Source: Trichosphaerium sp. ATCC 40318 (lineage: Eukaryota; Protista; Tubulinea). Taken from it: a stretch of 64,000 nucleotides of DNA. Position numbers and translations under genes: made by a program. The notes under the pieces are model-generated. The model had not been told where the DNA came from. It saw only the letters and a program-made list of their open reading frames with translations, and made no database searches. The stretch covers positions 124,001 to 188,000 of the forward strand of contig JALMLS010000336.1 in NCBI GenBank assembly GCA_038496445.1, in the 5' to 3' direction. Below, piece by piece: positions 5,082-63,570 of the stretch. The stretch's first letter is position 1. Every line of letters begins with the position of its first letter.

Positions 5082-5777
5082 GCAATTTGATAACTTCACA
5101 TGGGTTTGACAAAAAAAAAAACCAAAAAAAAAATAAAGAATAAAGTTATTTCTCTTGCATTGTCACTTTTATCGCTGCTCACTTCATGACCTTCGCTGCA
5201 GCCACTTCATGCGGCGCTTTCATCTATAACACGTGCACGAGGTGGTATAAACCCAGAGGGCAAACGTTGAAGAGTGGAGGCAAGTAAAATCTGACAAGCT
5301 AGAATGTCGAAGTTTGATAACTTAACACTATATAGTGAACCACAACAGTATGGAGTACTTGCTTCTGTTTTTGAGTAAGTGAACACTCAACATCTTTACC
5401 AGTTGTCCTCATCTTCGTCGCTTGTACACTCCTTGTACTTTTGACAGCACCTGGTTTAGCCAGCTATAGCCGTTAAACGCTCACCGAAAATGAGTGTGTT
5501 AATACGCTTTTGGCGTAGTGGTATATACTATGCGACACACCTCTTTCCTGAAATCACATACCAGATAGTTTAGGTTGATTGCTTGTTTTATTTGTGGTCC
5601 ATTTCAAAGCGTCTTAACTTATTCCTTTCAATTGTCGTTAAAAAGCAAACTGACTTGCACTTACCAACACAGAGAACATTTGCATAGTAGTATTCCGTGA
5701 CGTTCTACTAACCTAAGTATAGAGTCATAGTTTTCACATTATTGTGTTTGTTCAAATCATTTTCTTGACTGTTCAGT

Positions 5778-7026
5778 TTATAGCTCTAGTTTTATTTTAT
5801 TTATACTGGTACTATCAGAGAAGTACATATAACCTTGATGATAAACTAAACCCATGGGACCGTCAAGCTCTGAATCAAGTTTAACTTTCACAACATCTTC
5901 TGATTCTGGAAAAAGACGAAACAACCCTTTTACGTTGAAGTAATATACACTATCTAGTATTACCTAGTTAGTATCACAAGAGGTTTAATTAAATATATGT
6001 GAAACATGTTACTGATAGTAAGTGTTATTTACCTCTAGCACAACAAAGATACCAGCCACCGCTTATACAAGATGATGTACATATCTTTGGTATTTTATCA
6101 TTCTTGAGATTCATCTTCCATACAGCCCTCGTTGTACGTATAAACAAGTTCCCTTTCCTATCCATATCGACGCCTTTTGGTGCTCTGAACGGAGCTAGTT
6201 TTGATGATGAAATTATACGGAATATTGAAGAACTGTCATCAAGGATATTGATTGTTTGATTGTCACTGTCAGTAAAAATAACTTGATCATTTTCTCCAAT
6301 GACGACACCTCTTATCCATCCTTTACCGGAATGAACTGCTGATATATCTCCCGTAGATGAGTTAATTTTTTTCACACTCTTGTTGATGAAACAAAAGTTA
6401 GTAGGAGAAATCACTCAAAGAGTGCACGCCACTATTGAAAAAAAATTGTGTTTCTACTTTCTAGTAAAATCACGTGCCCTATTGGCTGCGTCAGCGATAT
6501 AAATATTATTCTTACTATCCACTGCGACATCATGAGGGTATGAAAGACTACCACCTGCGCATTCAAAGGTTGAAACCTCGTTAGTCTTCAAACAAAGTTT
6601 GCGAATGCGATGGTTTTGATTATCAGTTATAATAAGCTAGAACACAGTTATTTCGCCAGAAACGTTAATAAACACGTACGTTATTATCAGAATCGAACGC
6701 TAAACCGCGTATATCATCAAATACAGCAATATCGGCTGAACCTTGTTTTTTGTTAAACCAAGTGCTGTAATAGCGTTTAATAATTATGTACCATCTACAT
6801 AGCCGAGTGTTTGACCTGTTACGCCAATAACTTTGTAAATTGTTGAAAGCTCCTAAACTTCACTTAGAACTCATAAATTCGCCATAACGTTACGTTCTTT
6901 GTGTAACCGACAAGATTTTGTGAGGGAATTAAACTGAGAGCAAGTCTGAGCCACTGATGAAAGATCTGACGGCGTCATGACGAATTCTAGTATGTGTAAA
7001 ACCATTTCTACAGGTAATGTATCCAT
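5778..7026 (-). CDS. F-box protein with NHL-repeat beta-propeller, copy A
   Basis: MDTLPVEMVLHILEF...SVAQTC (F-box), followed by GYVDG...FDDIRGLAFD, ITDNQNHRIRK and YPHDVAVDSKNNIYIAD (NHL blades). Paralog at 20765-22166. Confidence 0.82.
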
Positions 7027-7089
7027 TGTTGCAGCGGAAATAGCGCAGGATCAGGCCACATATGTCAACCTTAGTCAAATGATGGTACA

Positions 7090-7103
7090 TTGTCACGTGA
7101 CAA
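7090..7103. promoter_or_regulatory. 14-bp perfect palindrome TTGTCACGTGACAA (extended E-box/G-box, Cbf1/CLEAR-like) about 65 bp upstream of the F-box/NHL copy A ATG
   Basis: Read directly from the sequence. A regulatory role is inferred only from position and motif identity. Confidence 0.4.
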
Positions 7104-7129
7104 GGTATTTACTTGTTTTGTTTATTCTT

Positions 7130-8898
7130 TTACAGTTGCAACAATAACATTACAATCAAGGGTATTACCAATCGTACACCTGATATTAAACTACAATTAC
7201 TGGTTTGTGATATAACTACAGAAGGTGTTGGCGATGTTGTTGTAGAAGTTGATGGCACGCTTGGTGTTGGCGTTGCTGAAGCAGTAGGCGCCGTAGGTGT
7301 ATTTTGCATTGTTGGCGCTTCTGTAGGTATAGTAGATGGCAATGATGGTACAGCAGTTGTAGGGATAGCTGATCTTGGGGAGACTGTTGTAGGTGTATCA
7401 GTAGTATGTGGGTTTGTTGTAGGTAAAGTTGTTGGTAGAGCAGTTGGAGCAAGTGTAGTTGGAGTAGTTGTTGTCGGTGGTAAAGTCGTAGGAGGTAAGG
7501 TCGTTGGCGGTAAGGTAGTAGGAGGTTGCGGTAAAGTTGTTGGAGGTGCAGTTGGCTCAAGTGTAGTTGGAGGGGCTGTTGTTGGAGGTAAAGTTGTTGG
7601 AGCAACTGTTGTTGGCGGCAAAGTTGTTGGTGGCGCAGTTGGAGCAGTTGTCGTTGGTGGAGTAGTTGTTGGTGGTGGCGTAGGTGGTGGAGGAGCTAGA
7701 ATTACTTCAGCTTTGAAATCATCTTCAGTCACAATGTCAAAAGGATCTATTTCAAGCCTAGTAGTGGCGGTATATCAGTATTTTCAAGTTGTATATGTAA
7801 GGCGTACATGAGTGTTGTTGAGTCTGGAAATGATAAACCAACTGGAACAGGGAATGTAACAATACCAAGTGAAGATGCTGAGAAAGAGGTATTAGAACTT
7901 TGGTAAACACCATTTTTTATGTATTTTTAAATTGAAACAAGTGGTAAATGGACGTACCCGATGGATTATACTCAGCCCAATTGACTCGGGCATACAATTT
8001 AGGAAATCCAGTATTTACTAGTATAGACTCAATTCTAACCGTGACTGTATTACCATCAATGTCAACATCAACAATTAGCTGTGAGGGTTGTGGGAAACTT
8101 GATTCTATGCTTGTATAATTTACAGGTACATTCACTGAGGGTGTTGTAATACTGCTTTCGTAACCAGATGTTAACAAATCAGAAAAGCTGATATTTACAA
8201 GTGTTCCTTCATCTATTTTTTGGGTTTTGTGTCAGTAAACTTCAGATGTAAACATTTTAGACAAACAACGGACTTACCAATGATGGTGGGCTGTTCGGGT
8301 AAATCAATTTCAACAGTATGTGTTCCCGCGACGTACGCATTGCTGGGTATGTATACTCTAAAGGCACGTTAAAACCAGAACAGGTAAATATGTGGTGAGC
8401 GTACTGTATTGATGTTGAGTTTGGAAATGAGACTATCATTGATGACGCTACACCTCGTGGAAATGAATTTGATTCAATTATAGCATCTAAAAACTCGAAT
8501 AAGGTCTTTTCAGTTACTTCATTTGATGTGAATTTTGATGTACCTGCTGTGTTGTAGGGTGATAGATCTACAATAAAGTAGTACTCGCCAAAGAAAGATG
8601 CTCCAGTAAATACATAGGAAACCGATATTGTTGTAAACGATACATCCAGTTGTGCTGTAAATGCAGAACCAATTGTAAATTGAGATTCTAAGGCAGAGTC
8701 GTTCACTGTGACCATCGACTCTGGAAATAAGTTTGTTGAAGTCGGTGATGATCCTGCAAATATAGATACAACAGATCCCTCCGCTATTAAATAACGTTAC
8801 CGAAAATGTGGAATTAATCTGGTATTCGTACTTGGTTGTGCGGAAATGGAGTGTATTATGAGATACAAGACGACTAATGAAATGAAGAGTTGATGCAT
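7130..8898 (-). CDS. Secreted, probably GPI-anchored mucin-like surface protein
   Basis: Signal peptide MHQLFISLVVLYLIIHSISAQP, a beta-rich ectodomain, a long Pro/Thr stalk, and a hydrophobic C-terminus (VRLVIPLIVMLLLQL*). Confidence 0.8.
7440..7695 (-). repeat. Degenerate coding tandem repeats of about 15 nt (LPPTT/APTT units)
   Basis: The ORF 7130-7732 contains a PPTT/APTT/LPPTT array. Confidence 0.85.
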
Positions 8899-9132
8899 TG
8901 ATAGTTTAAGTATTTGAAAAACGACTTTCGATTTTCACATGAACTACTCCACTGTGGATCATTCTTACCAAATAATCCAATTATTGTATGCAATGTAAAA
9001 TGAGTGTTAAACCAAAGAACAATCACTTCTTCACTGGAGGAAGTGACAACTTTGAAACATAGTGGTCTCGTTCAGTGAACGTTGCAACTCGCAAATCCAC
9101 GGAAAAAATGATGTACAAAGTCGGTTTTATTT

Positions 9133-10433
9133 TTACATTAGACAGCACCTATCAGAGCTATTATGAATGTTTGAAATTCTATACTGTAGACCCATTAATG
9201 TTGCTTCATAGAAAGCTACAAACGCAATTATTTGTTTGAAATCAAAAATTAAATTAAAAAAAAAATTGGTTTTACAAGTCACGTGCCATCATTGACACCT
9301 GAATTATCCTTTGCACTTGTTTCAACATAACTATGCGCCTAGAAATTAATTTAAAAATTGTAGCATAAAACTGGATAAAGGGCGCATTGACATACACCTA
9401 TTGCAGAAGCTAATTGTTTTCCTTGTTGGAAAGAAATATGCTTTTCATTCTCATCATCTCTGATATCTAACTTATTACCAACAAGTAAAACAGGTACACC
9501 TGGTGTATGGTAATTGATTTCAGGACTAAACTGAAACAAACTAGCTTCAGATGACGAACAACAAAATGCTAACGTAACTGTAGTTGTAATCTTATCAAAA
9601 CTATATTTGTTGGTAAGATCAAAAACGAGTACCATCACATCCTAAATAAATGACGGAGTTAAATCAAAACCAACATATCTATATCTACTAGATTAAGTGA
9701 ATGCTAAATACAAACAGAGTATCAGATTATTCCTTGTAGACTCAAGTTGAGTTGTTGTTTTTTCAAAAAAGCCTCATTAGATGACAGGCTTTGTTCAACA
9801 AACAGAGAGAACAGGATTGGTTTGGAGTAGAATAAACTCTCGGTGGCTCTAATGCAACACACGAGTAAGTGTTTATCTATTCCTCTTTTCATTATGCGGG
9901 TAATATGGCAGACTCAAAGTTAAAGAATGCGTGTTGGAGTTGTCACAAAATGTGTCAAAGTTGAAAGGACAATAGCACGTGATTGGCGTTAAAAACTTAC
10001 GTACTGCGTTAGTATAACCCAGCGGCCGTAATCTATCATAATCTTCACCTCCTGGAGGGGTGTCAACTAACTCTAAACAACAAATGGGTTTTTTACCTTT
10101 AATACCTAAATTACGCACCCAATACTGTTCGCCCGCATTTTGTTGAAAAAGGGTGTCTTGAGTACATTTAGATAATATTTTATCTTTAAACGTTTAAACG
10201 TGCTTTACTCTATCGTGAGTGCTTGGCGTATAGTCTGGCGAGAACTGATCTTACAGTAGGCGTTATTTTCAATTGTGGAGCGTTTTGTACCATCAACGAA
10301 TCTAAACAACAAACTAGTCTTTCCTTGGCGCTGTAAGTACCTTTGTAATGGCGTACGTATTAAAGTTCAACATACCAACGTTAAAGTGGCCTGTTAGAAC
10401 TACTTTGAGAGGGTGCTCGGCGGTACCCTCCAT
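9133..10433 (-). CDS. Atypical Rho/Rac-family small GTPase with CAAX (CCLM)
   Basis: Spliced product: LKVVLTGHFNVGKTSLL, DYTPSTHD, VDTPPGGEDYDRLRPLGY, LVGNKLD, VETSAK, ...SDRCCLM*. The last intron is GC-AG (donor 9286). Confidence 0.87.
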
Positions 10434-46214: not shown

Positions 46215-47410
46215 TTAATTATTTTTTTTAAAGTCATTCATCGCATCGTATATACCCGCAAGTTGAACCAATTTATCATTCAAACTTACTGGCAATAAAT
46301 GCTCTAAAAATATGGCAAATATTAGCTTCCCAGGGAGATAAACTACCTGCTTATTGCGTTTCACGGCTAACAAAAAAAGTAAGAATACTCAAAAACTGCA
46401 ATGTCACTTTTTGTTCATCAAAAAAAAAAGTTTTGTTTTGACTATTTTCTTGCATACCCGAAAGCACACTCTTCGCTACTGATTCCGGTGTTAAAGACTT
46501 TGCGGTGCTTAATTTGAATCCAGTGAACATACCAGTTGTAATATGTGCTAGTAGTTACATCAATAAGTTGATCAACATAAAGAAAAACAGTTCCAAAAAA
46601 AAACCAATCTCGTTTTTGTTCAACAAAAAAAAACCGTACTAGGACAAATAGTAGTAACACGAACACCATCATGGCCTGCTTTTTTAAGCTCTCTTCTCAA
46701 CGCGGTGCTTACCGCGAAATTGGCTGCCTTAGATGCAGAGTAATCGCCCATCTATGGAAAACTGTCAGACAAAAAAAAAAAATCAGAAAAACTCACTTTT
46801 GGAGCAGTGCTATGCGCTGATATCGATGAGATGTTTACTATGTGACCCCACTTGTTCTTGATCATATCAGGTACGTATTCTCGGATAGTATTAAAGTTAC
46901 TGTAGACGTTTACGCCGAAAGTGAATTTAACGTCTTTTTCTGTCAGATCTAAAATGTTTTTCCCGACTACAACGCCAGCGTTGTTGATGAGGATATCTAT
47001 TACACCCACATCGTCGCGCACGGCTTTCGCGACTTTTTTAACGGCTTCCGCTGAAGAAACATCGCAAGAATACGTGTGACAAGTATGTCCAGCGGATTTT
47101 AATTCCTTTGCTGCCATTTATGAGCTGTTTGGTTAATAGTAACGCGTTTACCTAATTTGTCCATGCCTGACTGGTTTATATCAAGTATTACTATGCTACA
47201 TCCCTCATTAGCGAATAATCTTGCCATTTCTCTACCCTTTTTTGACGAGAATGTTACAATAATTACAAATACAACTCTACGTACGATACCACACGCTCCA
47301 CCAGTAATTAGACATGTTTTCCCGTTTATTTTCTTATCAGGTGTTATTAAATCAAGCAGCTTACTGATAGCTATAATAGCCACAACGATACCGATCAGCC
47401 AGTACAACAT
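46215..47410 (-). CDS. Membrane-anchored short-chain dehydrogenase/reductase (RDH10/17beta-HSD11-like)
   Basis: N-terminal hydrophobic anchor, ITGGACGIG, ILINNAGV, catalytic YSASK, and ICP..ITTGMF. Confidence 0.88.
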
Positions 47411-53996: not shown

Positions 53997-56900
53997 ATGA
54001 ATTGTATCTACGCCTTGGTTCTATTATTCTTAGCAAAACTGACTTACCAAGCTCCGCCTATTGCCGGAGGACCAGGGTATGCACTTAGCGCATATGATAA
54101 AGGAGATTACTTAGCCGGAGAAAATGTACAGCTTTTTGGGACACCTGATTTTACAGTTGAATATTGGATGGCTGCTAGAACACCCTCTAATTTCTATCCT
54201 GTTATTTCTTACGCTGTGGCACGTGGAGAAGGTAGCGGTCGTATTGGGCAGTTTGATGATCAAAGGTGAGCGCAGTTTTGTTTTTTTGTGAAGAAGTTGT
54301 TTGAGGCTTTCGTTTAAGGTCTTAATAGGATTGCAATGATGCACGGATCGTCTATATTTATATTTTGTATGGATGCCACAGTATCTTTAGATGTTCCTCT
54401 TGAAAGCGGATGGCATCATTGGGCTATGACGTATAAAGGAGACTCAAATATTTTCAGAGTCTATTATGTAAACAACTATCCATTGAAACTGTTTTGTTTT
54501 TTTGACGTCTACTAGGATGGCCAAGTTATGTACAATGGTACACTGACAGGAAGGGATACGGTCGTTGGCATAGAAAATGGAGGAACAATCGTCATTGGCC
54601 AAGAACAGGTACGTCAATCAAAATCTAAAAAACTCCGAAATTGGGAACTTAAAAACTGCAGGATAGTAGTTTGGGCAATTTCGATCAACTTGCTTCTTTT
54701 CAAGGTTCTATAGATGAAATACGTATATGGCAGATACAAAGAACAGGTACCGACGACAAGCGTTTCAAAAATAATTCACGTGATTAAACGTATTTTTTGT
54801 TTGAAAACAGAAGCCGAAATACAAGAGCACATGAACATTGGATTGACTGGAACAGAACCAGGTCTCTCTGCTTTGTTTAACTTCGAATCATTCGATAGTA
54901 TTGAAAATAAGGTATGATATGCGCCATTATTCCTACGCTTTCGAGACGCGCCATTGTCTGTACACGATAATTAAGTTAAAGCTAATTTTTGTGTTTTTTT
55001 TTATAGTACACCAATCAAGCGAGCCTAACGCAAGACTTGTTTGTAAGTCATTGGGATATAGAGAAGGATACTTACACTATAGGAAATACAACAAAAGGAC
55101 CTATTCAAGGTTTATCAACTGCACCGTTGTCGAGTTTAGGAAGACCTACTATTATTTTCACAAACGACATCGATGAACGGGTAAGAAATAGCAAAATATT
55201 GTCTCGTATTTTCTCATAACAATGCCAGGTTATCACCTTAAACGCCGTTGATTTTGATGGAGACGCTTTGGTGTTCGCTTTGGATACCCTTCCATCTCAA
55301 GGAAACTTATTTATGTATGATGGTCAGAGCAAGCTCGCGCAAATCACAACAACTGGTTCACGTTAGTTCAAATAATATATAATCCATAAAATATCCTTAA
55401 AATTCTCTAGCAATATTGGGAAATCAAGTAATATTCGTTCCAAATAGTAACACTGTAATGAACGATAGCTTCACATACACGGTATCCGACGGTGTTGACA
55501 CATCAAGTGGTACGTACATTAACCATAAACTCACTCTCTAAAAGCATACAAAAGGTCAAATTATTATTCTACAAAACAATGCACCTACAGCGTATTCTGC
55601 CACCTACGATTCAGGTATGTTAATTTAGTTTTCTTTCATCTTTCTGATTTTTCTCGCTATTGTTGCTCTAATAATTTCTTTTCAGAGGAGGATTTAGAGT
55701 TGATATTGACGCTCACTTGCAGCGATCCAGATGGTGGTTTTATTGGTGCAACAATTACTTCTTTACCTACACAAGGATCGTTGTATCAAATTAAAACGGA
55801 TAGAACAACCAGAGGTACGTTTAAACGAGAAAATATACAAATAGTATAATGACTCTAAATCCAAAAAGGGGAACGCATCGTTTTACCAAATACAGCACTT
55901 ACACGTGACTCGAACATTGTTTTATTTGTTCCTCCATTAAATGGAGCAAATATACGCTCTACGTTCACTTTTGATTGCAGAGATGATAATAGTATACACT
56001 CAGCAGCAGCTATGGTTGATGTCGATTTGGAAGCTTTTGATGACAAGGTATGTCACAAGCTTTCTTGTTTTTTTTTCCCACTTTTTTGGTTATTCACTCA
56101 ATGCTTAGGCATTTGTCGGTGGCGCCTTATATGCTTTATCATTCGGTGGTATTGGTCAGAGAGTATCATTTATAATTCCTGGAAATGTACCGGATATACG
56201 AGGAATCGATTTATGGATAAAACCTGGGGTACATTTTTGTTAAGATGATTTCATTTTTAACATTTGTATTTAGGCTAAGGATGAAATGTCTTTAATGTCT
56301 TTTGGTCATTTCGAACTTGCATTAAGGTTAGGAAGTGTTCCTAATATGTATAATCTATACTCAAGTTACACGGACGCCGGTGGCGATAAAATTATAACAG
56401 CACGTTTCGGGGAAGTACATACAAACGTGTGGTCTCACATCGCTTGTGATTTTACTATTGAAGATGGGATATCTTTTTACGTCAATGGTGACTATGTTGG
56501 TTCCACTGGGAGTATAGGTTTCGGAAGCATCACTGTAAATACAAACTTTGACATTGGTGGATCATCAGAACACGGATACTACACAGGCGATATCGACGAA
56601 GTGAGTTTCTTTCTTTTTTTTTTTGTGATATTAATGTACCACGTTTTAGATGCGTTTGTGGAGCATCCCTTTTAGAAATCAAACGGATCTATACTTATTA
56701 AAAGATTCACTTGTAACTGGTCTTGAGACAACCCTCATATCTTCATGGAGTTTTGATGAAGGTGTTGGTAACATAGTAAAGTCAATTGGACTATTTACAA
56801 TACGGTACTAAGTGCAAAAAGTTACTTTCGGGTTTCTGACTTTTTTCTTAGTGGTACTCTTACTGGTTCTTCGTTGATACCTTCTTGGACTACATCGACT

Positions 56901-59900
56901 ATGCCTGGTCATAATACTGTAGTTCTTGATGAAGATAGTGAAGGGGTATATTTTAAAGTACCATGGGCTGACGTAGAAGGAGATAGAGTTGCTGCAGTTG
57001 TTTTGAGCCTTCCAACCAAAGGAACATTGTATCAAGTACTGATTTGTCATTATCGATTATTCTTAATTCCATCTTGCTTACTTGGAAACATAGGTAAACG
57101 AAGATGGAAGTATAGGCGCTAGGTTTGAGCCAACAGATTTTTACCAGGTAATTCTCGGCAGTTTTTAAGGAAAGGCTGATAATGTTGTTAGTCTTGGCTA
57201 TCCGATCAGCCGCCAATCGCTCAATGGGTTTCTAACGCCACTAATTGGTCGTCTCAATGGGGAAATGGACCTTCTTATTTCGCTTCCCAGCTTATAGGAG
57301 AACCAGAAACGTTTGATGAGACGAAATCGAAGCAACAAAGCGGGTATGAGGCTAAACTCTTTAAATGAATCAAGTTTCAAGTTTAAACTTTGTTATAGTG
57401 ATAGCGTATTTGCTTGGTCTCCATTAACTCAATGTGCTCGAGAATGGTCACGTGCGTAAATATGTTAATGCGAAAATACTAAAGGTATTCAAGAAAATGC
57501 TACGAGTGTCGAGTTTGTTGAAATTGAATTTGAGCAGGAAGTTTTTGTGACTGGTTTCGAGTTTTATGAGAGTTACAACCCAGGTGCTGTTGCAGAGATT
57601 TATCTACTCAACGAACACGGTGATTGGGTAGTATTATATGATGAAGGATTCAGGGTTATGCCTAATATATATAACGTGTTTCAACCAACAATACAATGTC
57701 AACGTATGTTGATAGGAGATCTTGTTTCTTATTTTTTTTCTTAAACGCAGCTTGTAACTTTTATATAGGTCTCTTTAAGACAAGACATGTTAGAATTATT
57801 CACGATACATGCAATGCCCAAGGTTGGAATGAGATTGATGCCATCAGAATGACGGGTGTACAATACAAAAAAGCTGTACGGAGGGTTTTAATTTTATTTG
57901 TTCCTTACTTGTTTTTTCTTTAAACAGGGTGTCATTGAGAATACAAACTCTCTTCTCTATTACGTTCCACATCCAAATAAAAATGGTATTGATACTATAG
58001 AATATACAGCAATAGATTGCCCTTATCGAGTAGACAGAGAAAGCAAACCTGGTTTCATTACATGTACGTCTTGAGTTGACTCATGGTTTCTTCGTTTTTA
58101 ATTAATTGACATTTTTCTGGATAGTTAATATATCGAGAGTGAATGATTATCCAGTAAATGAACCAGCTGTAACTGTTAAGGGTATGTCTAACGAAGATAC
58201 CTTTATTTTCATAAACATGACCGACATTGATAACCGGAACATTTCATTGGCGATAACAAGGTGGCCAGTTTATGGTGAACTATGGGCTGTACGATAAAAA
58301 CTATACTCAATCTTACAAAAAATCACGTGTCTTACATCTACAAGGTTTCCAATGCAAATGAAACTACAGAACAACTCAGAGCCCTACCGTAAGTCGTTTA
58401 GCAATAATTGCCAGCGTAATCTTTTGTTGTTTTTAACTCTAGTATACAGTCGTAATGCATCGTTGGAGAACGGATTTGTTGTTTACAGACATATCAAAGG
58501 AACTTGTGGTATTGAGTTTGATTTCTTTGAGTACAAGCTTTGTGATACTTCTCTTTGTTCAAACAATTCTAAGGTAAGCCTCTAACTACTTTCCGTCTAA
58601 GGCAGTTAATGTTTATAGGTCACTCTCGATATTTTCTGTAAGCCAGGAAGTCATGTTATCCATGATTACGTCAAAATAGCAATTGGTATCATTACAGGAT
58701 TTCTTATCCTTGCTGCTTTTTGTCTTCTCTTGTTCACATTCTATGGCGGATATATTTATACATATCCTCAGATTAAGGTATTATTAATTATGCTTCAAAG
58801 GGTGTTAAGGCTGATATTGTTTTGTGTAGATTGCTTCACCTCCGTTTTTGTTGATTATAATTTTCGGCGGTATTCTTGCTTATAGTACAGTCTTTGTATG
58901 GATGCTAGAAGTCACTAAAGCCACTTGTATCATACGAGTATGGACTCTTGCCTTTGGCACAATTCTTATGTTCACGTGCGTTCATCTGAATCCAAACCTC
59001 AAACCGTTTTGTTCAACATTGTACTAAGATGTTTGGTTAGTGGTATGTTTGTTAAGACGTGGCGTATCTACAAGATATTCAGGAACAAGTCTATCAAAAT
59101 ATTCAGTGTGCCTGACTACAAGCTATGGCTTATTGCTGGAATTGTTTCCGTAAGATCAAAACACGTTCTTGGTATTTTCCTGTTATATTTACTCCAGTTC
59201 TTGTAGAGCATTGGTATTGTTTTATTGCTTATTTTCAGTTTCGTCGACCCACCTGCAGTAAAATCACGTGTAAACCCATCAGACCCTTCTAAGACATTTT
59301 TAACATGCACCACTAATTATTGGACAATGGGTTCTATCGTTGCTGCTTTGGTACGATCTTACAAACTAGAAAAGAAAAAAAAAGGCTAACAAGTATTTTC
59401 TTTTAGAGCGTTCTTGTCATTTGGGGTGTCTTCCTTGCTATTGGCGTAAGAAAAGTAAGCTCAGTGTATAACGAAAGCAAGTACATTGGAATCAGTATAT
59501 ACGGGTTCGCTGGTATTGCAACAATCGCTGTACGTGACGAAGTCTTTCTTCAATCAACAATCAACTAAAAACCAAGATTTAAACATAACTTTTATACTAG
59601 GTACCGACTTTAATTTTGGTTAACACCAACCCCCTCCATACATTTGTGATTATCAGTATTTGCACTATACTTGCTGTAACGACGAGTATTTGGGTACTGT
59701 TTGTACCTAAACTAATTTCTTTGGCAAAGGGAGAAGACTTAAAAGCGAAGCACTTAAAACATAAGAATGCAAATAGCATAAAAGATCTCAATGCATCCCT
59801 TCAGGCTTCTAAAATGGATGCTTCAGCGCTTAAACGTCATCTAGACGAAAAGAATAATGAGCTTGATCAGAAGAATGCCTTGATTGAGAAACAACAAAGA

Positions 59901-60086
59901 AGAATAGAAGAGTTAAAGAAAAAACTACACAAAGATAAAGGATCACTTAGAAATCATAGTATTGGTATAAAGAAGAGATCTGGTCCTATGGTTGTTAATG
60001 TATCAATGTCAGAGTCAGTATCATCGGAAATTACAGAACAGGATACAACAGATGCAACACAAACATCAAATATCATTGATGCCTAA
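53997..60086 (+). CDS. Class C (GABA-B-like, 7tm_3) GPCR with a large LamG / cadherin-like / jelly-roll ectodomain and a C-terminal coiled coil
   Basis: 7TM motifs IKIASPPF, GMFVKTWRIYKIF, YNESKYIGISIY and LFVPK. Ectodomain: two LamG-like domains (WHHWAMTY..IGQEQD..GSIDEIRIW; WSHIA..GDIDE), repeated D.DGD/LPT.G.LYQ units, and a SSQW..AWSP..ESYNPGAV..EIDAI domain. More than 20 introns. Confidence 0.85.
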
Positions 60087-61474: not shown

Positions 61475-63570
61475 TCAAGTTGTATTGAATTGTACAAGTT
61501 CTAAAATACCACCTACAAGAAAAAAGGTACCAGTGACAAAAGCATGGATTTTTCTTTTCTTTGACCGTTGTTCTAGTACACCCAACGCTTCATTAATAGT
61601 AGGAATAACCTCTAGTTTTGTATCAACATTCGGCCAAAATGACTTCATTTGTTCTTGCCAATCCAAGTTTTTATCTGGCTTACTTACACTTATATTAGAG
61701 TCATCAAGACGTGTTGTAGGATCAATCTTAGGTGATGTAAAGTATATAGTATCAAAGGATAATCCTTGTTTTGTCGTAGTTTCATGTATTGCTTCAAGGA
61801 GCACCTTGGGATGCCTAGAATGGCTGCAGTTGAAAAGTAAAACTCTTTCAACTTGTTCATCGTCTTGACTTGTATCCTCTTTATATGTAGAGCAAAACCA
61901 ATTTGTACATGCCTTAATACTTTCTGGCGTATGTGCACCATCAAGGTAGAAAGTCACAGATCCACCAAAACACTCTAAAACTTGCGATCTGCCTTAAGTT
62001 GATGTTAAGCAAACTTATTGAAAAAAAACCAAAAACAATTTTTAAGCGCTTACCAGGTAATACAGTATCCTTTAATCCTTTCTTGAATATATCATCTATA
62101 TTAAATAAAGGCGCATACGGTACTTTTGATTCATTTGCGCTATCTACGATCATATTTTTTTCCGATTTTTTTCCAGTTTTTTTTTCTAACCAAGCCTGAG
62201 CCAATGCCACCGCCAATGATGCGTTTGTAACTTGATGATCTCCCTTTAATCCCAATTCTATTTTAGATGTTTCTTGAGCAAAATAATGATCAAGAGGACG
62301 TGTCATGAGTAGTTTAGTGTCTTGATGTGCTTGAGCCCTTCTAATGAGTTCATTTAAAGCACTAGACTCTTGCGGAACAGTGATAGCTTGAACACCTTTT
62401 AATAAATGTTAACTCAAACAAAACTGTAATCAACTATGAGTGCATACCATCTTTAAAGATTCCTGATTTCTCATAAGCTATTTCTTTTAGTGTATTCCCT
62501 AGTAAGTTCATATGATCGTAATCAAGTTTTGTAACCCTAAATAAGCATGTTTGTGAGGAGGGAGATTGGTTAATATTATTATTGTACATACGCTGTAACA
62601 GCTGGAGATTTGAAGCAATTTGTTGCATCTGTTCTTCCTCCAATACCAACTTCCATAATAACACAATCAACGTTTTCCTCTTGGAATACACGCATTGATA
62701 GAAGTGTCATATAACGGAACCATATAGGCATATCAGCAGGTGATTTCTAGAAAACTTATGCGAATGACAAACACAGATGGCTTTCGGATTTTTTTCTTAA
62801 ATGGGTGCTCAATAAACCGTTCATGCAACGGAACTTTGCAACAATTAGATTGTAACTAACAGTATGCCAAATGGAAAAAGATGATAGTATGTTGTTAATA
62901 CACAACTTGGTTTTCTTCACGCCACAAAAATAAAACGCCATGTGAACACTTCAGTTTGTACGTACTTTACTGCTCTCTAGTGATTCCCACACATTCCAAA
63001 AGTGCTTTGCAAACATGTCTTCTCCAATTGCCTTGCCATTGATCCGTATACGTTCTCGAACAGTAATCAAGTGTGGAGAAGAAAACAAGCCTGTTTTTGT
63101 TAACGTTAAAACGAGATGAAAGCTTTTGGAAGTTTTCTCGTTTGAAATAACGTTTGTACCTGTTTTAAAGCCTTGATTACGTAAAATAGACTCTACAAAA
63201 GCGCATGTGGAGCCTTTTCCTTTTGTTCCGGCAACATGAACTACTTTTGGTCCTAGTTTCGTTAACTACCTTGTAATTAGCGTCATTAAGTTTTATTGCG
63301 TACGTTTACGCCTATTCTGTTGGCAAAACTGGTCATTTCTTCGCTTAGGTCTATTTCCAAGTTACTTCGCCTTGCTTTCTCCCAACTAGCCTTTGCAGCG
63401 TTGTTTGACATGAGGGAGGTGTTCATTACATCCAAAGCCTCCTTTTTCTTTCATTGGCGTTATATTCTCTCGTAATAGCGTACCTTGTACGTGTGATGCT
63501 TCATAGCGCTAGTTTTAGAGCTTTTCATCCTATTCCTTGCTACAGTATTTCTCAGCCTGCTCGCAAGCAT
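61475..63570 (-). CDS. FPGS: Folylpolyglutamate synthase
   Basis: [68 protein letters not shown]. Confidence 0.93.

Follow-up and report, generated by a model that had tools for sequence, protein, structure and literature searches.

Activation models for G protein-coupled receptors (GPCRs) of class C are built on a Venus flytrap head, or a Cache head in GPR158, that closes around a small ligand. GABA-B receptors are heterodimers with an ANF/Venus flytrap head, and GPR158 (mGlyR) and GPR179 belong to the GABA-B branch without a flytrap and bind a small ligand through a head made of a Cache domain plus an EGF-like stalk (PMC12716839). Outside Metazoa, the heads of class C receptors are diverse and lineage-specific (PMC3971589, PMC12716839). 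In gut fungi, about 100 receptors of this class bear pectin-lyase beta-helix, EGF or SBP type II heads that reach 1600 residues and for which carbohydrate binding was proposed (PMC5168858), and the amoebozoan class C receptors surveyed had ANF, BMP or no recognised head, the Dictyostelium Grl receptors having BMP heads (PMC10445921). Laminin G (LamG) domains, pentraxin-like domains and cadherin-type repeats are recorded for adhesion GPCRs (class B2) and not for class C in the surveys PMC3251606 and PMC12716839. Here, a 64-kb window of the amoeba Trichosphaerium sp. ATCC 40318 (contig JALMLS010000336.1, hereafter C90, positions 124001-188000, in an assembly of 70.3 Mb and 642 contigs) was analysed, and a gene at positions 53997-60086 of this window (plus strand) was found to encode a candidate receptor of this class. 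In the reading favoured here, to which a probability of about 0.6 is given, the locus is a single type I class C receptor gene whose product has a GABA-B2-like core, a lectin/cadherin-like head without a flytrap, and a proposed coiled-coil dimer sensing a large ligand.

Judged from its sequence, the predicted receptor fails the canonical class C layout on the flytrap, passes on the seven-transmembrane (7TM) region, and is not an adhesion GPCR. It shares with GABA-B receptors the 7TM motifs around KTWR..IF, NESKYIG.S.Y and FVPKL, the lack of an NCD3G domain and, as modelled, a coiled coil directly after helix 7, but its head of about 1085 residues consists of LamG, cadherin-like and discoidin-like modules, and its coiled coil was modelled as a homodimer. 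It resembles GPR158 and GPR179, the second-best solved matches for exon 29, as a GABA-B-branch class C receptor devoid of a flytrap, and differs from them widely in the set of folds that makes up its head. Its head draws on the same stock of modules as that of adhesion GPCRs, with LamG or pentraxin domains, cadherin-type repeats and lectin-like domains carried by a long stalk, whereas those receptors possess a 7tm_2 core with GAIN/GPS and this one a 7tm_3 core, with no match to 7tm_2, GPS or GAIN in the Pfam scans, which covered 26 exons and matches at E up to 1. A shared principle is seen in the non-canonical class C receptors of protists and fungi, with replaced, sometimes carbohydrate-binding heads, some longer than 1000 residues, in large lineage-specific families (PMC5168858, PMC3971589, PMC10445921, PMC12716839). 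The first-pass annotation of this DNA had held that established class C receptors sense their ligands through a periplasmic-binding-protein (PBP) fold; this generalisation is too narrow, as it leaves out the Cache head of GPR158/GPR179 and the diverse non-flytrap heads on record (PMC12716839, PMC3971589, PMC5168858). Exchange of heads on class C receptors has been published before; the finding surprises less than that annotation held.

The family assignment was obtained from the last exons of the gene. Matches to 7tm_3 (PF00003) were collinear in exons 26, 27 and 29 (30.3, 20.7 and 32.3 bits; profile positions 41-87, 90-125 and 175-212), and seven hydrophobic segments were present between residues 1105 and 1345. 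Among solved structures, GABA-B2 was the top match for exon 26 (E 4e-3), exon 27 (E 2e-3) and exon 29 (E 7e-4), followed by GPR158, GPR179 and GABA-B1, with mGlu5 trailing. The result for exon 26 came from a three-paralog profile, its single sequence having no match in the PDB, and exon 29 was searched both alone and as a three-paralog profile. Exon 27 matched GABA-B2 only, MFVKTWRIYKIFRN being aligned with MFAKTWRVHAIFKN, and the only receptor matches of helix 7 in exon 30 were GABA-B2 chains, weak (E 0.6-2.5) and with FVPKL in common with one chain. The modest E-values are due to the length of the queries (36-50 residues), and the four exons agree. The protein is thus assigned to the class C (7tm_3) seven-helix receptors on sequence matches that point to a core closest to GABA-B2 among solved structures, in line with the GABA-B-like 7TM first read from the letters, which was recovered in four separate exons.

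The head is made of a LamG domain, two cadherin-like repeats, a second LamG domain, a repeat that appears to carry a beta-sandwich between its halves, and a last repeat. For the first LamG domain, the collinear Laminin_G_3 and Pentaxin matches of exons 2 and 4 were weak (E 0.04-0.09), and its assignment was secured by BLAST matches to bona fide Laminin_G_3 domains, with residues 29-221 aligning to that of protein P0113 (E 5.6e-11) and residues 117-478 to P0129 (E 3.5e-22), an ichthyosporean protein described below. For the second, exon 13 alone matched Laminin_G_3 (PF13385) at E 4.5e-9 and 37.1 bits, above the cut-off of 27.6. The 'GG..YAL' start noticed in the first-pass annotation is indeed common to both domains, but the internal duplication deduced from it is at best ancient: the two domains shared 28% identity over 87 residues (E 1e-4, two-sequence BLAST) and are therefore homologous but long diverged. 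Concerning the repeats, exon 8 (repeat 1) matched Big_9 (PF17963; E 5.1e-5, 24.5 bits against a cut-off of 23.6), Cadherin_5 (E 1e-3) and Cadherin_3 (E 2e-3), the motif D.DGD...LP..G.L recurred in the translation of exons 6-11, repeat 2 was assigned by this motif alone, and repeats 3 and 4 stayed below the Pfam threshold, with weak matches of exon 21 to Cadherin_5 (positions 55-84) and Big_9 (positions 51-76) and of exon 22 to Cadherin_4. In a self-BLAST of the head, the cadherin-like repeats showed no mutual similarity at E up to 1, which indicates that they are old. The whole head contains 13 cysteines, four of them just before helix 1, and the nine-cysteine NCD3G domain had no match in the Pfam exon scans. 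No ANF_receptor, Peripla_BP or SBP match was found in the 26 exons at E up to 1, and every stretch longer than about 100 residues was given to another fold, so that no room is left for a flytrap; the flytrap-free head of LamG domains, cadherin-like repeats and a jelly-roll that had been proposed is thus borne out.

The jelly-roll itself had been called pappalysin/FBXL4-N-like, a label that holds, as the fold of a close relative matches those of PAPP-A and FBXL4. Of all head exons, exon 19 shows the strongest conservation across the paralogs (81%, 52% and 49% identity), and a profile built from it and its paralogs matched 377 proteins in a library of 1.84 billion proteins; in many of these matches, which include bacterial and animal proteins, a unit of 140-160 residues is repeated. 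With profile hidden Markov models, F5_F8_type_C was matched weakly by 14 of the 26 relatives, and against PDB sequences the beta-sandwich profile gave weak matches to lactadherin C2, factor VIII C2 and CBM32. The Pfam set scanned left out PF25900, the C-terminal module of the PAPP-A scarf domain, and scans of this family were consequently blank or limited to the weak F5_F8_type_C matches. The AlphaFold model of a 32%-identical relative (P0007:11-153) had a predicted local distance difference test (pLDDT) score of 96.7; its best PDB matches were PAPP-A and PAPP-A2 (template modelling (TM) score 0.76), followed by the muskelin discoidin domain, XRCC1-N and CBM32, and its fold matches included CBM32 and chitosan-binding modules. 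In the ESM Atlas, the same model matched PF25900 clusters at TM 0.90-0.93 and FBXL4 at TM 0.94. Exons 17-20 align to the family consensus and keep QW, SSQ, G.P, GD..AW, YE.YNPGAV and GWNEIDA. Residues 756-929, judged by the fold modelled for the relative, are assigned to the family of PF25900 and the FBXL4 N-terminal domain. The receptor thus shares its beta-sandwich with the PF25900 module of PAPP-A and the N-terminal domain of FBXL4, but it has no metalloprotease or F-box, and the module stands in a receptor head. PAPP-A begins with a LamG-type module.

The beta-sandwich appears to be inserted in a repeat. Repeats 1 and 2 have at most about 25 residues between the end of their first half (D.DGD...LP..G.L) and their second half (V.F.P..N..G.D.F.Y...D). 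Repeat 3 has its first half in exon 15 (ADVEGD...LSLPTKGTLYQ) and its second in exon 21 (LLYYVPHPNKNGIDTIEYTAIDC), which matches the C-terminal halves of Cadherin_5 and Big_9. The 170-residue beta-sandwich stands between the two halves, and the same order was found in two proteins of other origin (P0145 and P0129); on this motif order, the module is apparently nested in cadherin-like repeat 3. A MAFFT alignment intended for folding misplaced exons 15, 16 and 21.

Behind the 7TM, the tail segment at residues 1364-1424 (approximate borders) has a heptad pattern, and its Pfam hits were solely of coiled-coil type. When the tail was modelled in two copies, these formed a parallel, in-register dimer over exon 30 tail residues 52-112, with a score of 0.54, a mark reached by 21 of the 30 proteins solved as one-chain pairs and by none of the 23 solved as single chains, and with a best control of 0.00. 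The three runs shared at least 90% of contacts, and the partner pLDDT was at least 81. Thus, about 60 residues right after helix 7 are modelled as a parallel two-stranded coiled coil, where the first-pass annotation had also placed one.

The region has about 37% G+C, and a bacterial-type scan for open reading frames (ORFs) returned short open frames only; read in three frames, the coding pieces switch frame every 50-300 bases, as in a eukaryotic gene whose introns are very short. The receptor gene comprises 30 exons with 4422 coding bases and 1473 codons, without internal stops (Table 1). Its ATG (53997-53999) is the first past an in-frame stop and opens a hydrophobic, signal-like peptide, and its stop codon is at 60084-60086. 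All 29 introns are GT..AG, with lengths of 42-95 nt (mean 58). Exons 1-15 were hand-called from frame-keeping GT..AG pairs, and exons 16-30 were fixed by a spliced contig. An automatic dynamic-programming gene model was rejected, as it read through several introns, and was replaced by the RNA-supported joints and hand-called introns. Family, homology, fold and complex searches were made exon by exon, and the joined 1473-residue model entered local computations alone, namely frame check, hydropathy and BLAST with retrieved sequences.

Table 1. Segments of the receptor gene, with window positions of their exons.
Segment	Exons	Positions	Strand	Residues or basis
Signal peptide and LamG/pentraxin-like domain 1	1-5	53997-54265, 54329-54467, 54516-54608, 54662-54746, 54811-54911	+	residues ~1-229
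Linker and two cadherin-like/Big_9 repeats	6-11	55007-55180, 55229-55361, 55411-55509, 55591-55614, 55686-55814, 55869-56047	+	residues ~230-475
LamG domain 2	12-14	56109-56228, 56274-56600, 56650-56804	+	residues ~476-676
Cadherin-like repeat 3, first half (ADVEGD...LSLPTKGTLYQ)	15-16	56852-57035, 57094-57147	+	motif order
PAPP-A/FBXL4-type discoidin-like beta-sandwich (fold judged on a relative)	17-20	57192-57343, 57399-57451, 57494-57703, 57769-57875	+	residues ~756-929
Repeat 3, second half; repeat 4 (start RVNDYPV); short four-cysteine stalk	21-24	57928-58063, 58125-58288, 58345-58388, 58450-58573	+	
Class C 7TM, GABA-B-like	25-30 (first part)	58619-58777, 58830-58975, 59041-59149, 59207-59350, 59407-59529, 59601-~59740	+	
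Cytoplasmic coiled coil (modelled), Ser/Thr-rich tail, stop	30 (rest)	59741-60086	+	coiled coil residues ~1364-1424

The gene is at least partly transcribed. Among the public runs, X1 (contigs) contained a quarter of the locus words, whereas none of the locus was found in X2 and X3. One 2330-nt spliced contig from X1 (placed on 53997-59990) contained 14 GT..AG joints from 57094 to beyond 59990, confirmed the last 14 introns, and joined the beta-sandwich to the last cadherin-like repeat, the complete 7TM and the tail in a single molecule. Its alignment begins at exactly 57094, the predicted acceptor of exon 16, with about 7 contig bases left unplaced, as expected if these come from exon 15. Contig and genome differed at three positions, 59110 (G>A), 59242 (C>T) and 59469 (T>C), all three being synonymous third-position changes; variation between strains or alleles is probable, not RNA editing, and the pattern is in keeping with a constrained gene. 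The locus is confirmed as a real gene. The earlier view that head and 7TM form one gene stands, as the spliced contig bridges the two and three loci keep the same order, and the block positions given with it agree with the exons for LamG 1 (exons 1-5), LamG 2 (exons 12-14), the jelly-roll (exons 17-20) and the 7TM (exons 25-30).

The paralog census called for by the first-pass annotation yielded two full-length paralogs and one partial paralog with the same order. The full-length ones, on contigs C131 and C11, keep the domain order and strand from exon 1 to the tail. In tblastn searches, C131 was collinear with the receptor over residues 2-1472 and C11 over residues 28-1408, with breaks at the same exon borders, and the stretch of exons 6-11 was collinear in paralogs L008 and L009. 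The LamG 2 and beta-sandwich exons found the same loci on C131 and C11, the beta-sandwich exon finding in addition a locus on C78, the contig of the partial paralog. Identity to C131 and C11 was respectively 60% and 40% for exon 1, 37% and 27% for LamG 2, 81% and 52% for the beta-sandwich, and 75% and 58% for the 7TM exon. As C131 is closer than C11 in head and 7TM alike, head and body have been inherited together through at least two duplications, and apart from the beta-sandwich core the 7TM is the most conserved part among the paralogs. The partial paralog (C78:158300-163100, L010, minus strand) is a shorter and more distant member, with a LamG end, a beta-sandwich repeat and a 7TM at 26-37% identity, and may carry a single LamG domain.

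The next-nearest 7TM exons, on C70 (49%) and C49 (47%), both lack the LamG cassette. Upstream of these 7TMs, weak collinear Peripla_BP_6 matches were found on C70 (L011, 141500-151499, about 5553-9431; E 0.004) and on C49 (L012, 247000-256500, about 5862-8700; E 0.0014). These weak heads hint, and do no more than hint, at a LamG cassette that displaced a flytrap-type head on a GABA-B-like receptor. Across the 70-Mb genome, at least 141 matches to 7tm_3, counted at the level of exons, and at least 81 to G-alpha were found, indicating that class C receptors and their G proteins are both greatly expanded.

The head cassette was also found outside this genome, on receptors with other outputs. P0129, from the ichthyosporean Chromosphaera perkinsii (1719 amino acids), combines Laminin_G_3/Pentaxin, Big_9 and beta-sandwich modules with one transmembrane helix, a kinase-like domain and a guanylate cyclase domain, and P0145, from an ENA metagenome (1071 amino acids), combines LamG, a nested beta-sandwich unit, VNDAPV and further repeats with one helix and a kinase. 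P0145 aligned to residues 637-1027 at 27% identity (E 5e-33, local two-sequence BLAST), collinear through 'VNDAPV', and P0129 gave E 4e-17 for the cassette in the same kind of comparison, the identity of the two proteins to the receptor being about 26-27%. In both, the beta-sandwich is flanked by LP..G.LY and YVP...D..Y..DC, and the stretch of exons 15-16 is collinear with both. P0129 and P0145 thus share with the receptor a collinear cassette of LamG, Big_9-type repeat and PAPP-A-type beta-sandwich, but possess one transmembrane helix with a kinase-like or cyclase output instead of a 7TM. A further protein, P0062, of 3270 residues and from a transcriptome, bears a looser form of the cassette: several LamG domains occur together with the beta-sandwich and Ephrin_rec_like repeats, and seven hydrophobic segments at the C-terminal end give a weak match to TRP channels.

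Among the best 150 of the 377 library matches, none shared the class C 7TM and the closest were about 30% identical; no ortholog was found in the protein library searched, in which marine amoebae are poorly covered. A word search with the head of P0129 returned six proteins, none with 7tm_3, a weak negative. In the literature covered, with the head-domain supplements of PMC12716839 and PMC3971589 outside its scope, no report was found that pairs LamG/ConA-like, cadherin-like or PAPP-A-type modules with a class C 7TM. Neither the head cassette nor its nesting, nor its recurrence on cyclase and kinase receptors, seems to have been described before. A tentative extension, which is held to be possible but doubtful, is that the cassette is an old, portable eukaryotic recognition module used on at least three kinds of output, namely class C 7TM, guanylate cyclase and kinase receptors, and that it displaced a flytrap here. 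If true, this would be a natural demonstration that a rigid lectin-type head recognising macromolecules or surfaces can drive class C 7TM dimers.

Mechanistically, the receptor would be a dimer, held partly by its coiled coil, whose LamG and discoidin-like modules would recognise a large ligand, for instance a glycan, a matrix component or a molecule fixed to a surface, in place of a small metabolite. The cadherin-like repeats, stiff and probably dependent on calcium, could relay a shift in the relative positions of the heads to the 7TM pair, as in other class C dimers, and the 7TM bundles would then switch on one of the many G-alpha proteins of the amoeba. In this lineage, the architecture would have arisen by replacement of a flytrap-type head with the cassette on a GABA-B-like receptor. 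The suggestion of the first-pass annotation, drawn from the lectin-type folds, of a convergent adhesion- or pattern-recognition-type receptor that may sense surfaces or prey glycans is a reasonable guess.

Several points weigh against a single-gene, flytrap-free receptor of this kind. The spliced contig gives no RNA cover over exons 1-15, which encode both LamG domains, the link of these exons to exon 16 is based on the open frame, splice signals and paralog collinearity, and run X1 was taken as RNA by guess. Each single-exon 7tm_3 score is below the whole-protein cut-off of 33.5 bits, which the collinear sum of 83 bits exceeds. The beta-sandwich fold was modelled on the 32%-identical relative and not on this protein, and its nesting was read from motif order, not from a structure. 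The tail model supports pairing, although this result may stem from solved coiled coils that the model had memorised, and the flytrap-type heads of C49 and C70 rest on E-values of 0.001-0.004. The first of these points would favour a gene model artefact, namely a secreted LamG protein and a shorter receptor joined by hand, or a pseudogene, as exons 1-15 are without RNA cover and their introns hand-called. However, a frame of 1473 codons over 30 exons, in which every intron is GT..AG and of the verified size class, is not due to chance; the contig alignment begins exactly at the predicted exon 16 acceptor with few bases unplaced, the order and strand from exon 1 to the tail recur at two other loci, and the contig differences are all synonymous, so that an artefact is hardly credible.

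Alternatives that accept the gene differ on what the head does and with what it pairs. The head might mainly serve adhesion or mechanosensing, holding substrate, prey or cells while the 7TM reports force or acts as an anchor, without GAIN; LamG, pentraxin-like and cadherin-type repeats are listed for adhesion GPCRs and not for class C in surveys (PMC3251606, PMC12716839), and a long head with four stiff repeats and a dimeric coiled coil could bear load. Against this unlikely though not far-fetched option, no exon scanned matched 7tm_2 or GAIN/GPS, and the GABA-B-type 7TM motifs are kept in a 7TM that, the beta-sandwich core aside, is the part best conserved among the paralogs, which fits signalling better than anchoring alone. 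The protein could also be one subunit of a heterodimer with a paralog, as in GABA-B1/GABA-B2, where one subunit binds the ligand and the other couples, and alone it may then not signal. Three collinear paralogs, all with a similar tail (C131 aligns through residue 1472), and a GABA-B-like 7TM with a modelled coiled coil right after helix 7 would suit such a pairing, which is nonetheless considered decidedly improbable, the homodimer model already passing its controls and the paralogs lying on different contigs. The head might instead sense a small ion or molecule, such as calcium bound at its cadherin-like and LamG sites, in a functional analogue of the calcium-sensing receptor: many LamG domains bind calcium, and the translation contains D.DGD and VNDxP motifs, which are typical of cadherin-like repeats that bind calcium. 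Calcium in cadherin-like repeats, however, usually stiffens the structure and is not the signal, and glycans, lipids or proteins are the usual ligands of discoidin-like and LamG folds, with CBM32 and chitosan-binding modules among the fold matches, which makes small-ligand sensing very unlikely.

The receptor with a GABA-B2-like core and a lectin/cadherin-like head poses the question of whether a class C 7TM dimer can be switched by large or surface-bound ligands. It also adds a case of protists reusing sensing cassettes on GPCR, cyclase and kinase outputs, for which the three paralogs and the cyclase and kinase relatives form a ready comparison set.

Concerning the surroundings of the gene, a tRNA scan found nothing, and no tandem copy of the receptor was present in the 64-kb window. 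Two neighbours on the minus strand, recognised by eye from ORF translations and unrelated to the receptor, have the look of a short-chain dehydrogenase (46752-47410) and of a folylpolyglutamate synthase (61475-62306).

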